Below are positions 1,512 through 59,448 of a stretch of DNA of 64,000 nt, one piece after another. The translations under genes and the position numbers were made by a program. Within the stretch, counting starts at the first letter, position 1. Each line of letters begins with the position of its first letter. The notes under the pieces were generated by a model that worked only from the letters and a program-made list of their open reading frames with translations, ran no database searches and was not told the origin of the DNA. The stretch is from Octopus bimaculoides. Taxonomy: Eukaryota. Location: contig NC_068983.1 in the NCBI RefSeq assembly GCF_001194135.2, forward strand, positions 159,898,777-159,962,776. Direction: 5' to 3'.

Positions 1512-1848
1512 ATTCTTTGTAAGCCTAGTACTTATTCTATCGGTCCCTTTTGCTGAACCGCTAAGTTACAGGGACGTAAACACACCACCAACGGTTGTCA
1601 AGCGATGTTGGGGGGACAAACACAAACACACAAACATACACACAGACACACAAACACGCACATATATATATATATATACATATATACGACAGGCTTCTTT
1701 CAGTTTCCTTCTACCAAATCCACTCACAAGGCTTTGGTTGGCCCGAGGCTATAGTAGAAGACACTTGCCCAAGATTCCACGCAGTGGGAATGAACCCGGA
1801 ACCATGTGGTTGGTAAGCAAGCTACTTACCACACAGCCACTCCAGCGA
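1512..1848 (-). mobile_element. tRNA-derived SINE, family A (3' end lost in gap)
   Basis: Same head and body as the copies at 13533-13905 and 19664-20114. Confidence 0.9.
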
Positions 1849-1850
1849 CT

Positions 1851-2129
1851 AACTAAAATTTTGATAAAAGTTTTATCAAAATGTATTATTTGTATTTTTC
1901 TAATGTCTTATGATTAATATATTTAATATTTCATTTTCTAAATCTTTCAAAATAGCCTTAATGTGTGTAAATCCCTCTTTTGGAATTCCTTGGGACATTG
2001 AAGTTTGTCCCCTTTAAAGTCAAGGGCGTACTTCTCCACCAGTACGTGCAATTTGATCTTTCTTAAATTTACCTGAATTTTTTCCACGTGACGAGAACCT
2101 TCTGTATATTTTAAATCATTCTCTTGTAT
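1851..2129 (-). pseudogene. rplO: Bacterial 50S ribosomal protein L15 pseudogene (5' part, internal deletion)
   Basis: NDLKYTEGSR / RGKNSGKFKKDQIARTGGEVRP*L*RGQTSMSQGIPKEGFTHI / INHKTLEKYK / FIKIL matches the L15 pattern MKLxELKxxxGSR...GKGxKGQxARxGGGVRPGFEGGQxPLxxRLPKxGF; stops and frameshifts present. Confidence 0.8.
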
Positions 2130-2160
2130 TCTAATTCATTCTCTCATACTTTTACTATTC

Positions 2161-2768
2161 TTATAATTCTTCAGTTGCTTTACGACTTCATCTAGCAACT
2201 TGGTCCAACTGTACTTTATGATTTCAATCCTTCTTTTGTAGCCCTAATCATATTAATTGGTGTAATTGAGCCTAATGATGTTGCACAAACATTGGCTAAT
2301 CCAGCGTGTTCAGTTACAGCACGAGTATGTCCTTCAGTAATAACGCCAGGCCCTTTATAAATGGTATAATCTTTCCTAACCTGCTCCAAAACATCCCATT
2401 ATTTCATAAGCAGCTGGTGTTCCAACAAGTGGTGCTCTAACTAATGAAATTTTTAGCCCTTTTGTTTGGTGTTTTAATAACATCAGGTACATCAGTAGCT
2501 TCTGTACTTACCAATCCAGCACGTCCATTTTTCTATCACAAATTATTAAAATTGTGGCAAATCTGAAATGACATCCGTATTTTGTCACTCTTGTTAGGCG
2601 ATTGTTACAATTGTTTCAGAAATCTCATTACCAGCTTGATTGCAATTAAATGAAATTTGTTCAGTTAATGATGTTTTAGGTCCATCTTGATTATTATTGT
2701 TCTCTTTTTTTTTCTTTTGCTTGCTCTTGAACAGTCGATATTAAATATACAATTTTCTTTTCTGTCAC
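2161..2768 (-). pseudogene. rpsE: Bacterial 30S ribosomal protein S5 pseudogene with N-terminal extension
   Basis: ETIVTI / VTKYGCHFRFATILIICDRK / NGRAGLVSTEATDVPDVIK / [22 protein letters not shown] / [46 protein letters not shown] / DQVAR*SRKATEEL* aligns colinearly with Firmicute S5 (e.g. [14 protein letters not shown]); several frameshifts; TAA at 2161-2163. Confidence 0.93.
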
Positions 2769-2787
2769 ATGTTTCGTTTCTTTCTGA

Positions 2788-3120
2788 TTATAATTTTAGA
2801 CCAGCTTCACGAGCTGATTCAACAAATGGCTACTTTTACATGATATAACTAACCACTGCGATCAAATACAATATTATGAATTTCGATTAGGTAGGTAGAG
2901 CATTTTCAGCAATATCTGCGTCAGTGCTTATTTAACAGCAGTAATAACTGAAGTTGAGTTTAAATAATTCATTTTAAAAATTGACGAAGAAACAATTGTT
3001 ACTTGTTTTATGTGAATAACAATGAACACTTAATTTGAAAACATTTAATCTTGGGAGTAGTAAAGTACCTGTAATTTTATTTTAAAGACGGTAGCATCTT
3101 TTGTTTTACAGTGAATAGAA
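2788..3120 (-). pseudogene. rplR: Bacterial 50S ribosomal protein L18 pseudogene
   Basis: KRCYRL*NKITGTLLLPRLNVFK / VTIVSSS / HNIVFDRSG*LYH / FVESAREAGLKL* matches L18 motifs GTxxRPRLNVF(K/R)S and VVFDRGGYLYHG...AREAGLKF; stop at 2788-2790, about 20 bp upstream of the rpsE start. Confidence 0.9.
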
Positions 3121-3362
3121 AACAAAGACAATAATTCAAGAAATACATATGGCTTAAGATATACAGAATTGGAGAACAAAATATCAGTTATAATGTGTGG
3201 GAATTATAAGTTTCAAAAGAAAATGATTTTTATAAATATTGCAGTTTTATTTTTTAAAGATAAGTAATTAATTTATATTTAATTTGTTAAGCTTTTATAG
3301 AAAACAACACACGTGTTCCTGACTTATTTGCATCTCCCTCTGTCTCTCTTTCTTACATATAT

Positions 3363-3568
3363 TGATTTCTAAATTTGGCGCAGGGCCAGCAATTTTGAGT
3401 GAAGTGTAAATCGATTACATCGACCCCAGTGTTCAACTGGTACTTAGTTTATCGCCTCGCAAGGATGTAAGGAAAAGTCGACCTCGGCGGAATTTGAACT
3501 CAGAACATAAAGTGAGATGAAATACCGCTAAGCATTTGACCCAGCGTGCTAACGATTCTGCCGTCTCA
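3363..3568 (-). mobile_element. tRNA-derived SINE, family B
   Basis: Reverse complement: GGCAGAATCGTTAGCACG...GTTCTGAGTTCAAATTCCGCCGAGGTCGAC...CTGGGGTCGATGTAATCGA; more than ten related copies in the window. Confidence 0.88.
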
Positions 3569-4249
3569 CAGTCTCATATATATATATATATATANNNNNN
3601 NNNNNNNNNNNNNNNNNNNNNNNNNNNNNNNNNNNNNNNNNNNNNNNNNNNNNNNNNNNNNNNNNNNNNNNNNNNNNNNNNNNNNNNNNNNNNNNNNNNN
3701 NNNNNNNNNNNNNNNNNNNNNNNNNNNNNNNNNNNNNNNNNNNNNNNNNNNNNNNNNNNNNNNNNNNNNNNNNNNNNNNNNNNNNNNNNNNNNNNNNNNN
3801 NNNNNNNNNNNNNNNNNNNNNNNNNNNNNNNNNNNNNNNNNNNNNNNNNNNNNNNNNNNNNNNNNNNNNNNNNNNNNNNNNNNNNNNNNNNNNNNNNNNN
3901 NNNNNNNNNNNNNNNNNNNNNNNNNNNNNNNNNNNNNNNNNNNNNNNNNNNNNNNNNNNNNNNNNNNNNNNNNNNNNNNNNNNNNNNNNNNNNNNNNNNN
4001 NNNNNNNNNNNNNNNNNNNNNNNNNNNNNNNNNNNNNNNNNNNNNTATATATATATATATATGAGAATTTAATTTCTATATAGAAGAGTATGACGTTCCC
4101 ACTTATGAATTTGAAGTTAAAATGAAATCTACTTTACTTTGTCTGAGTTAATAAATTCATTGTTACAGTAAAGAACAATTGTCTTTGCGATAGTATCATA
4201 TCGTTAATATCCTTAATTTTGATAAGTAATATCACAAGTTCTGTTAGAT

Positions 4250-55959: not shown

Positions 55960-56273
55960 CGCGTACGTGTGTATTAATCTCGTGTTGCACAAACGACTCA
56001 TAAGTCAAATATATACACGAAAACTAAGATTCATAAAAATATTGATATGAACTCATTTCTTTTGTAAAGACACAACATCTTTGTTCCTTTGGAAGGATCT
56101 AACATACCAGATCGATAGCGTGTTAGATGACATTCACCAGCAAGCAATCATGTAAGAATGACAAAACTGGAATTGTACCCATGCTTTATGCATCATAATG
56201 GTCTCCGGTTTGGAGAGCATGATTGGTGGAAACCGGAACTATCTCAGTACAGATATGCATCCGCATACGTGTG

Positions 56274-56304
<31 letters not shown>

Positions 56305-56334
56305 ATACATAATAAAACACACACACACATGCAT

Positions 56335-56545
56335 GTATTGCCTTCTATTCTCGGCACAAGGCCTGATATTGGGGAGGATCCTAGTAAATTTTATCAACCC
56401 CAGTGCATGACTGGTACTTATTTTATTGACCTAGAAAGAAAGACAAGCAAGATCAACCTAGGCAGTATTTGACCTCAAAATGTAAAGTCGGAAGAAATGC
56501 CGCTAATAATTTTTTCCGGTATGATAATAATTCTGCCAGCTGGCT
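56335..56545 (-). mobile_element. SINE family B, diverged
   Basis: ACTGGTACTTATTTTATTGACC...AAATGCCGCTAA...TTCTGCCAGC. Confidence 0.7.
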
Positions 56546-56659
56546 GTCTTATACACTCATATTATTTTCTACATGCTACAGATCACTAAGATCTTCTTAA
56601 AATAAAAACTAAAAATCATATAAGATAACGCATTATGTACACCTAACTTCATCTAAATA

Positions 56660-58800
56660 TCTCCTCCTCCTCCTGTCTCGTCCTTCCGTCTCTCCTCACT
56701 GCCTCTAACCTCATTGTCCGCACCCCTCGCATTTCCACAATTTACTTCCTCCCCAAAATCCACAAACCTAACAACGCTGGCTGCCCCATCGCCTCCGCCT
56801 GAAACTGCCCCACCGAACTCATCTCCAGATATCTTGAGCATGTTCTTGCCCCCCCCCCCTAGTGGCTTCCCTCCCTCTCACATCCATGACACCAACCATG
56901 CTCTTCGTTTGTTCAACTCTTTCTCTTTCCTCCTGGCCCCTCTAAACTTCTCTTCACTCTTGACATCAAGAGTCTATACACGGTGATCCCTCACGACGAA
57001 AGGCTGCGTTCACGCCAACATTTCCTTGACCTTCGACCAAACCCGCAACCTGACACATGCACACTCCTTCGTCTAGCCTAACTTATCCTCTCACTTAACA
57101 GCTTCTCGTTCGCAGGTGATTTTTACCAGCATTTCTCGGGAGTGACCATGGGAACGAGAATGGGCCCCAACAATGCGAACCTGTTCGTTGGATACGTTGA
57201 GGCCCAAATATTCTTAAGTTTCACTGGTCCCACTCCTTAACTATACGGTTGTTATATTGACGACCGTATCGGTGCGACATCACTCTCCCGCGAACATCTA
57301 GACTCTTTCTTCTCTTTTGTCAAATCTTTCCATCCTGCCCGCCAATTCCCCTGCACTATTTCCGACACTTTAGTCGCCTTTTTCGACATTTCTGTCAGCA
57401 TTCATCACTCCAATCTCACCACCTCTATTCACTACAAACACGCAGACTCACGCTCATTCCTCAACTTCTCCTCCTGCCACACTAAACACACCAAGCTCTC
57501 CATCCCCTATTTCCAATTCTTCCGTCTACGCAGGCTCTGCAGTGACAATCATGACTGAGACTCAATCTCAACACATGGCTCGCCACTTCATCCTACCACT
57601 ATCCACGCCGTCCTTACCAGAGCACGTTCTGTGGACCGTGCATCTGCTCTCTCTCTCTCCCCGCCCCACCCCGCCGTCACTCGTTTCTCGTCTCCCCTCA
57701 CCTACCACCCACTACCCTACCTCTCCAACCCCACCCTCCTCACAGGTACCCATCATCGACCCTATCATATCACTGACTCCTTCACCTGCACTTCTAGCAA
57801 CGTCATCTACTGCATCTCCTGCTCTCTCTGCCCTTCTCCATACACAAACGGGTTCGCGGAACACCTCCGAGACATCCGACTTGGCAACAACACATAGGTC
57901 TCGCGCTATTTCCGCTCTACCGGTCACTCTTTACAACACCTGTCTGTGTTCGGATTGTCCTTGCACAGAGGCCATCCGGACTCCCGTCTTCGCCGTGAGC
58001 AGGGATTAATCTTCTCATTTCGCTCCTTTGCGACACATGGGCTAAACTCACCTCCCTTCTTCATCTAATCCTTCTCCTCTCTTCCTGTTAGACCTACTTC
58101 CTCCCACCCACCTCTCCTCTCTTACTCTGGAACATACTCCTCTTCATTCCTACCCACCTTCTCACTTCTACCCTTTCCTTCATCGTCATCCCTTCCCTCG
58201 TTACCCCACCCCTACACATTGCAACCCCATCATCCCTATACATCCGTTCCCAGCCCACCCATTCCTTAGACCCCACGCTTGCTTCCCTCACTCTCGCCTC
58301 TCCCGCACCCCAACACCACCACACCACACCACACCACCCCGCACACACTGGTGTTGACCACTTCCCAGTACCCACATCAGCGCTCACATTAGCACTGACC
58401 ACTTCCCAGCACTTACACCATCATCCACACACCTACACGTGCACACGCCAATGTCACCAGCTCCCTCCCACACGCACGCACACGCACATACACGCTCCCA
58501 CATACACACGCACGTTTACCTTCATTTTAGGATCACCACTACTTTATTATCTCCCCTTCTTCCTAGCTCTTCTGTGTGACCTCTCTGTCAGGCATTCGCC
58601 ATGATAGATCGCTATCCACTATACCTTTTTCTATTTTCTCTCCCTGTTTATTTCTATGTTCCTTCCTGTCGAAAGAGCATAGGCTCGAAACATAGAAGAC
58701 TTTCACACTTTTCGAGCGTTAAACTAATACATCTGTTTGTGGTTTAAACACCCGCCTTCGTCTTTGTTTTTTTTGTTTTTGTTTTTTGGTAAATTCTCAC
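56660..58800 (+). mobile_element. Penelope-like retroelement (RT + GIY-YIG endonuclease), decayed, with pyrimidine/CA-rich 3' region
   Basis: IYFLPKIHKPNN, LFTLDIKSLYTVIPH, GVTMGTRMGPNNANLFVGYVE, YIDD, SIPYFQFFRLRRLCS, FTCTSSNVIYCISCSLC, FAEHLRDIR; terminal GAAAGAGCATAGGCTCGAAAC. Confidence 0.92.
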
Positions 58801-59448
58801 CATATGTATATAACTTTTATCAAGATATTGTCTTAGCAATCATCATTCTGTCACATAGACAGTTGATGTTCGTCTCCGTCTTGAATGAAAACCCGATTAT
58901 ATCACGTTAAAACCACGTGCGAGCACACAAGGTTTTGAAGTAAAGAAACTAATACACACAGCAAGAGAAATAACTCTTCAATTATTATCTGGCATTAAAT
59001 TTGAATTTTGAATCTCATACGCTGACTTAAATGACCATACATGCATTATGCAATTTTAGTGTTTGCAAGAAATATTTCGTATTTGCATATATCTGAACCT
59101 GATTGCAGAATTTTTACCTGTTTTCACATATTTTTGTCGTTAAACGTGGCACATAGTGTTGTGAATTCACAGGACTGTATGTTTATAAGTTTATATGTCT
59201 ATTTCCAACACAAACTGCAAACACATATTGAACCTTTTAAAAATCGGCAAACACGCTCATTAAAGGAGGTGAAAAAAAATATTTATGAGGCAAACAACCA
59301 CACACATAATAAACTACCAGTCGGCAATATAACCCGAACATGTGATAACGAATCCCAACATTTCTTCTCTAATTCAATTTTTTTCCGTTATGATATGTGG
59401 TCTATGCCTGATGAATACGTTTGAGATATGGAACTATTAGTAGCACTA

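Follow-up and report, generated by a model that had tools for sequence, protein, structure and literature searches.

A decayed spc-operon fragment, probably derived from Spiroplasma, in the genome of Octopus bimaculoides

A 64,000-nucleotide stretch of the Octopus bimaculoides genome (assembly GCF_001194135.2, contig NC_068983.1, forward-strand positions 159,898,777 to 159,962,776; here termed the window and numbered from its first letter) contains a piece of bacterial DNA of ∼1.25 kb (1854 to ∼3110). Three-frame translation of the minus strand from 3102 to 1854 reveals the ribosomal protein genes rplR (L18), rpsE (S5) and a truncated rplO (L15), all of them broken, and the bacterial stretch is single-copy within the window. 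The fragment is very probably a fossil of bacterial spc-operon DNA that was integrated in an octopod nuclear genome from a Spiroplasma donor near the stem of the Citri–Chrysopicola–Mirum (CCM) Spiroplasma clade; as such it would be neither contamination nor a host gene. A first-pass annotation, made from the DNA letters alone, had attributed positions 2129–2768, which are exactly the S5 gene and the spacer that follows it, to a Mollicute of Spiroplasma, Mesoplasma or mycoides-like type. The analysis described here agrees with that attribution and narrows it to Spiroplasma.

The three genes lie on one strand in the order L18, S5, L15. The rplR pseudogene (3102–2788) covers residues ∼15–121 of L18, ends in a TAA stop codon (2790–2788) and was identified by tblastn, frameshift-aware alignment and the NCBIfam model TIGR00060. 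It is separated by a 19-nt spacer (2787–2769; 18 nt in the S. melliferum-type locus) from the rpsE pseudogene (2768–2161), which measures 608 nt from the GTG of a GTG-ACA-GAA start at 2768 to a TAA stop codon at 2163–2161, compared with 612 nt in the intact S. melliferum-type gene. Its first 57 codons (2768–2598) form a low-complexity N-terminal extension ahead of the conserved (R)LTRVTK core, where S. melliferum has 56 codons and Bacillus 19, so that S5 is ∼38 codons longer than in Bacillus; the 'roughly 50' codons first reported from GTG-ACA-GAA correspond to this whole pre-core stretch. The extension is rich in K, E, N and Q and is interrupted by two in-frame TAA codons and, within an A9 run, by one frameshift. 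Within the core, the motif K-Y-G-C-H-F-R-F retains HFRF, encoded by CAT TTC AGA TTT (2570–2559) and correctly read at first pass in place of RFRF, while the KGGR part is mutated. The protein ends in ...ATEEL before the stop codon.

A spacer of 31 nt (2160–2130) follows S5 and contains neither rpmD (L30), which would take ∼180 nt, nor a remnant of it, in agreement with the gap of about 30 bp that had been noted as leaving no room for this gene. The rplO pseudogene (2129–1854; TIGR01071) comprises residues 1 to ∼111 of 145, about the first three quarters of L15, and ends exactly at a host repeat. Its start at 2129 is ATA, a mutated ATG, from which the translation reads IQENDLKYTEGSRH, bearing out the proposed xNDLKYTEGSR; an in-frame ATG at 2147 was considered as the L15 start and rejected as it is mismatched to the homologous start. 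The NCBIfam scores are 88.6 bits for rpsE_bact (TIGR01021; curated cut-off 164), 41.1 bits for L18_bact (TIGR00060; 87.9) and 31.4 bits for rplO_bact (TIGR01071; 78.0). With E-values of 1e-7 to 4e-25 these matches are well above chance, and they fall under the cut-offs because of pseudogene decay. No credible remnant of L6 upstream or SecY downstream was detected in the window, nor was a further operon gene found anywhere in the 64 kb.

The extent of decay was determined with a purpose-written protein-to-DNA alignment that tolerates frameshifts, using S. melliferum as the reference. L18 aligned over residues 15–120 with 52 of 100 residues identical, four frameshifts (∼3012, 2930, 2886 and 2827) and three in-frame stops (3084, 2889 and 2851). 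S5 aligned over residues 26–201 (86 of 170 identical) with six frameshifts in the core (∼2602, 2528, 2451, 2378, 2361 and 2206) and two stops (2218 and 2190), and L15 over residues 25–111 (40 of 77 identical) with four frameshifts (∼2022, 2012, 1920 and 1894) and no stops, together with a deletion after GSRH. In total there are at least 14 frameshifts and five stops, with ∼50% protein identity to the best relatives. The differences from S. melliferum amount to 0.31, 0.28 and 0.47 at codon positions 1, 2 and 3, respectively, and the near-equal divergence at positions 1 and 2 indicates long neutral decay. The CpG observed/expected ratio is 0.62 in the fragment, 0.74 in the window and 0.90 in the S. 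melliferum genes. The in-frame TGA codons of the window copy align to Leu and Gly rather than to Trp and are therefore decay products. The proteins concerned do contain few Trp residues, as the first-pass annotation had cautioned: L18, S5 and L15 of the relatives have none except for one in S. syrphidicola S5. The copy is dead and without function.

The window as a whole has a eukaryotic character, with 30–40% GC, dense microsatellites, N gaps and interspersed repeats; Rfam and tRNA scans of it gave no matches. On the L15 side the bacterial piece adjoins a host interspersed repeat resembling a short interspersed element (SINE-like; 1512–1850), of which at least four other copies with 73–85% identity are present in the window. 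The L15 homology reaches 1854 and the repeat ends at 1850, a distance within 3 nt. On the opposite side, AT-rich unique sequence in which no homology to L6 or to the L18 N terminus was detected (3111–3299) lies between L18 and a second host interspersed repeat (3300–3594) with at least ten partial copies elsewhere in the window. Both multi-copy repeats and the fragment are contained in a single gap-free stretch (1512–3594) that is flanked by N gaps at 1502–1511 and 3595–4045, and the fragment is physically continuous with host DNA on both sides. Farther along, a retroelement open reading frame (ORF) at 41.4–43.5 kb encodes a product with 89% identity to a protein of Octopus bimaculoides and ∼60% identity to proteins of other named animals, which marks the host as an octopod. 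As a separate observation, a second copy of the SINE-like repeat (1130–1500) is arranged head to tail with that at 1512–1850 across a 10-N gap, and this gap beside the bacterial fragment may conceal a repeat that was collapsed or wrongly joined.

To place the donor, 34 named loci with all three genes, obtained from a genome scan and targeted look-ups, were compared with the window copy. At the DNA level the best matches were Citri-clade loci (224–267 summed bits, ∼69% identity over 620–780 bp), and, except for Mesoplasma lactucae, all others scored 165 bits or less. Frameshift-aware scores summed over the three genes were 602 for S. melliferum, 574 for S. taiwanense, 499 for Bacillus and 488 for Amedibacillus. 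Over 329 informative columns the identity was 0.53–0.56 to CCM loci, 0.48–0.49 to Apis-type Spiroplasma and, outside Spiroplasma and Mesoplasma, 0.40–0.45 (Bacillus 0.45). A phylogeny of the repaired and concatenated L18, S5 and L15, which the first-pass annotation had suggested, places the window copy inside Spiroplasma plus Mesoplasma in 200 of 200 neighbour-joining bootstraps, and as sister to or within CCM in 85–96% of bootstraps with Spiroplasma-guided stitching of the reading frames. When residues attributable to CpG decay were masked, 62% of bootstraps showed the copy as sister to CCM and another 23% as sister to a group formed by CCM and the barnacle Spiroplasma; in none did it leave Spiroplasma plus Mesoplasma. 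At 14 columns diagnostic for Spiroplasma plus Mesoplasma the window copy has the clade state at nine and the outgroup state at none.

The spc operon of CCM species (S. melliferum-type L002, S. phoeniceum L006, the Mirum-clade locus L088 and S. syrphidicola L089), which is closest to the window copy in both DNA and protein sequence, likewise has the arrangement L18–S5–L15 with short spacers (18 nt and 12 nt, respectively, in the S. melliferum type) and without rpmD. CCM S5 has ∼56 residues before the core and ∼203 in total, with KGGRHFRF and a short EELQG-type C terminus, and CCM L15 starts MKLN(E/D)L(K/Q)YTEGSRH. The window copy differs from these operons in being a dead fragment with ∼50% protein and ∼69% DNA identity that branches outside the sampled CCM species, in having AGA rather than CGY for the Arg of FRF and 'MG.FGAG' rather than 'IGHFGAG', and in an S5–L15 spacer of 31 nt rather than 12–15 nt.

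The individual signatures that had been proposed as marks of the donor clade, namely L30 loss, a long S5 and KGGRHFRF, carry different weights. rpmD is absent from all 16 Spiroplasma/Mesoplasma loci, where the S5–L15 gaps are 12–20 nt, and its absence from the window copy was therefore inherited from the donor and predates the transfer; the spacer, which lacks any remnant, contradicts a deletion after insertion. The absence is non-specific, however, because rpmD is also missing from 36 of 69 other Bacillota loci (mostly Erysipelotrichaceae; gaps of 9–21 nt). Anaeroplasma, Acholeplasmatales, Izemoplasma and Bacilli keep rpmD, with S5–L15 gaps of 183–239 nt, in line with the first-pass statement that Bacillus-type operons retain it. 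The long S5 held up as a nearly specific feature, the only other long ones being those of two metagenome-assembled genomes (MAGs), of Breznakia (224 aa) and Erysipelothrix (200 aa). KGGRHFRF occurs in CCM Spiroplasma and in both Mesoplasma but does not mark the clade as a whole, since the motif is RRFRF in Apis-type Spiroplasma and RNFRF in the barnacle symbiont. Several RR lineages encode this pair as CGT-CGT, in which one CpG transition yields CAT. The His alone is weak evidence because such a single change could create it, and HFRF by itself was rejected as a donor marker. More generally, CpG decay can produce an apparent 'signature' residue in an old insert. The short '...EEL' C terminus of S5 and GSRH in L15 fit CCM better than Apis-type Spiroplasma or Mesoplasma. 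It is the combination of features together with the tree, rather than any single signature, that carries the conclusion on the donor.

When the stitched S5 of the window was compared with a set of 5.8 billion proteins, using a word index that is coarse for such a decayed query, the sole relative was a second decayed copy of the same segment (P0001; hereafter the sister copy). With P0001 as the query the top matches were all Spiroplasma S5 proteins (70–74% identity, 231–239 bits, 203–238 aa), the cluster members of which include S. poulsonii, S. citri, S. mirum and S. eriocheiris, compared with 62–64% identity and at most 209 bits for Bacillaceae S5 (166 aa). The sister copy is represented by five contigs from five samples (L001, L085, L086, L087 and L092, from the metagenome or SRA assemblies ENA ERZ27257302, ERZ27257296, IMG 3300002508, SRR5248856 and Ga0099364), which are mutually 98.8–99.9% identical, flanks included; the metagenome scan added only one more contig of this family. 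It consists of S5 and L15 residues 1–79 with a 15-nt spacer and without rpmD, has 72% protein identity to S. melliferum, and lies on eukaryote-like contigs. Its flanks contain SINE-like ORFs and its host DNA has a CpG observed/expected ratio of 0.30, compared with 0.74 in the window; the eukaryotic flanks, low CpG and SINE-like ORFs identify the sister copy as host DNA of some animal in the samples, with repeats that look insect-like. The 173-aa S5 ORF is open yet evolves neutrally, with five nonsynonymous versus two synonymous differences and a divergence of 1.3%, the same as in the flanks. A 70-aa fragment of bacterial tyrosine-tRNA ligase (tyrS; TIGR00234, 67.5 bits) was also observed on L085 (703–915, minus strand), ∼1 kb upstream of the sister S5–L15 segment, a hint that several bacterial fragments are present in the sister host as a rearranged mosaic.

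The sister family has the same S5 and 5′ L15 segment as the window, without rpmD and with the same donor-lineage traits, and is 70% identical to it over 728–737 bp. It differs in being much younger or slower-evolving, with an open S5 ORF, unrelated flanks and the tyrS fragment alongside. The two copies group in 74–88% of bootstraps and share traits that are not of CpG type (AGA in FRF where CCM has CGY, 'MG.FGAG' and an N-terminal 'F.(R to C)NQA.N' stretch), and in each of them Cys occupies the GGR, IGH and DVY positions and the stretch 'F[NK]CNQA[GD]N' is present, all of which could point to one ancestral insertion now seen as orthologues or paralogues in related hosts. The shared Cys residues, however, are due to parallel CpG decay of Arg codons, as revealed by polymorphisms among the sister contigs (CGT/CAT and TGC/CAC), and the shared non-CpG states are also compatible with a common donor lineage. 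Moreover, the flanks of the two copies have no similarity, their breakpoints are not the same (L15 is cut off at residue ∼111 in the window copy but at ∼79 in the sister copy, which has no L18), and the host CpG ratios differ as well. Among 98 columns that are invariant in Spiroplasma/Mesoplasma, nine changes are joint to window and sister copies versus 6.6 expected (P=0.15), and the three that are identical are single transitions. Common descent from one insertion was rejected on the grounds of flanks, breakpoints, CpG and joint changes, and we consider it improbable. In our reading, the two copies arose by separate insertions into different hosts, from donors that are related to each other and unsampled.

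A donor from Mesoplasma, Entomoplasma or the Mycoides cluster rather than from Spiroplasma would account for several features of the window copy, in that both Mesoplasma loci lack rpmD and have an S5 of 224–225 aa with KGGRHFRF, and the DNA score of Mesoplasma lactucae (235 summed bits) lies within the Citri range. The proteins argue otherwise. Mesoplasma identity to the window copy is 0.45–0.47 and the summed frameshift-aware score is 513, below the CCM and S. melliferum values given above, and the window copy grouped with Mesoplasma in zero bootstrap replicates of a sampling that extends to Mesoplasma and stops short of the Mycoides cluster. The S5 C-terminal tail of Mesoplasma is long, whereas the window copy has the short Citri-type ending, and at the L15 N terminus the window and CCM have GSRH where Mesoplasma has GSRK. 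Such a donor is thus poorly compatible with the protein evidence and is judged distinctly improbable.

Several points weigh against the assignment to an integrated Spiroplasma fragment. The trees are neighbour-joining trees on corrected p-distances rather than model-based ones, and the Ixodetis clade, the Mycoides cluster, Entomoplasma and marine Spiroplasma MAGs lie outside the sampling. Bacillus-guided stitching puts the window copy next to CCM in only 60–70% of bootstraps, and with protein identity of only ∼50% the copy can be placed inside Spiroplasma only with limited resolution. Neither the set of 5.8 billion proteins nor the metagenome scan yielded a closer donor. The contig bearing the fragment (2.1 kb) is joined to the scaffold solely across N gaps, and when public assemblies were searched for an exact match to the longest pseudogene ORF still intact (57 aa, 2216–2389), no record was returned, so that the same ORF was found in no independent assembly.

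The last two points would also be expected if reads of a living Mollicute had been joined to octopus repeats during assembly. The decay rules out contamination from a living bacterium, since at least 14 frameshifts and five stops in three essential ribosomal genes are impossible in a living cell, and codon positions 1 and 2 are about equally diverged. The host repeats are joined to the fragment without gaps on both sides, one of them within 3 nt of the L15 homology, and the CpG ratio of the fragment is near that of the host and below that of S. melliferum. A chimeric contig is hence unlikely, and contamination or chimerism as an overall explanation has very little probability. The least probable origin is a non-Mollicute member of the Bacillota without rpmD, such as an Erysipelotrichaceae, or a Bacillus-type donor from which rpmD was deleted after insertion: although more than half of the non-Spiroplasma loci (36 of 69) have rpmD-less gaps of 9–21 nt and Bacillus subtilis S5 is the best match among solved structures (106.6 bits, versus 61 bits for M. 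pneumoniae 7ooc, in a PDB that holds no Spiroplasma ribosome), the rpmD-less non-Mollicute lineages have an S5 of 168–190 aa (exceptions 200 and 224 aa), all have RRFRF and are only 0.40–0.45 identical to the window copy, which fell outside Spiroplasma plus Mesoplasma in none of the 200 bootstraps and has a remnant-free spacer of 31 nt, as against 15 nt in the sister copy.

We propose that the donor was a Spiroplasma, most likely of a lineage not yet sampled that branches on the CCM stem or immediately outside it, and the operon of this donor would already have lacked rpmD and carried the long S5. A stretch from the interior of the spc operon, comprising rplR, rpsE and part of rplO, would have been integrated in octopod nuclear DNA through the germline, from a Spiroplasma living inside host cells or in association with host tissue. 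Under neutral evolution the fragment would then have gained frameshifts, stops and changes of CpG type, and a host repeat would have come to bound it within rplO; the extent of decay points to an old event. More tentatively, an unsampled Spiroplasma lineage that is sister to CCM may have been in close contact with the octopod germline and may also have left the same segment in an unrelated, heavily CpG-methylated host, a wider scenario that we regard as possible rather than probable.

Nuclear inserts of endosymbiont DNA, of the type transferred from Wolbachia to arthropods and nematodes, are well documented. The window copy resembles them as a non-functional symbiont fragment in a host chromosome that decays neutrally and is bounded by host repeats, which interrupt or bound Wolbachia-type inserts as well. 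It differs from them in its probable Spiroplasma donor and its cephalopod host, and amounts to 1.25 kb in this window. The literature library that was searched yielded no description of a Spiroplasma insertion in a cephalopod or of a comparable bacterial insertion in Octopus. Spiroplasma are known chiefly in arthropods and plants, and also in some crustaceans and other marine invertebrates. The marine-crustacean members among the records examined here are S. eriocheiris and the barnacle endosymbiont. The route through prey or gut that had been put forward at first pass has plausibility alone in its favour and is speculation. The Mollicutes isolated from cephalopods that are cited in PMC11567158, Mycoplasma marinum and M. 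todarodis, are wall-less and cephalopod-associated, yet they belong to the Hominis group and not to Spiroplasma.

Defunct inserts of bacterial DNA preserve traces of former close associations between microbes and their hosts. If the wider scenario above is true, the fragment would be the first molecular fossil of a Spiroplasma–cephalopod association, and a Spiroplasma-derived insert fixed in the octopod genome would mean that such bacteria had at one time reached cephalopod germline cells. The presence or absence of the insert among octopod species could in that case serve as a dating marker.

Elsewhere in the window, an older and a young copy of the C-terminal ORF of a retroelement are present on the plus strand at 40880–41240 and 41380–43525 ('...RPDIVV...IPIIVGALG...LLGTAHILRKTL'), with interruptions by N gaps; the young copy is the one with the 89% O. 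bimaculoides match. A decayed reverse-transcriptase domain of an element resembling a long interspersed element (LINE-like; '...HGFRTERSCFTQLL...YADDTK...') lies at 46700–47400 on the same strand. The region 56000–59000 is unusually GC-rich (0.42–0.52) with a skew of C over G of −0.33 to −0.51, and Tandem Repeats Finder reported only short CA and TA runs in it. In the databases, Spiroplasma-type S5 proteins appear under the animal names Zophobas morio and Ixodes persulcatus (P0042 and P0132), which could reflect symbiont contamination or further insertions. Two loci labelled Bacteroidaceae and Parabacteroides distasonis (L052 and L071) contain Bacillota-type spc operons close to those of Erysipelotrichaceae and are probably mis-binned contigs.

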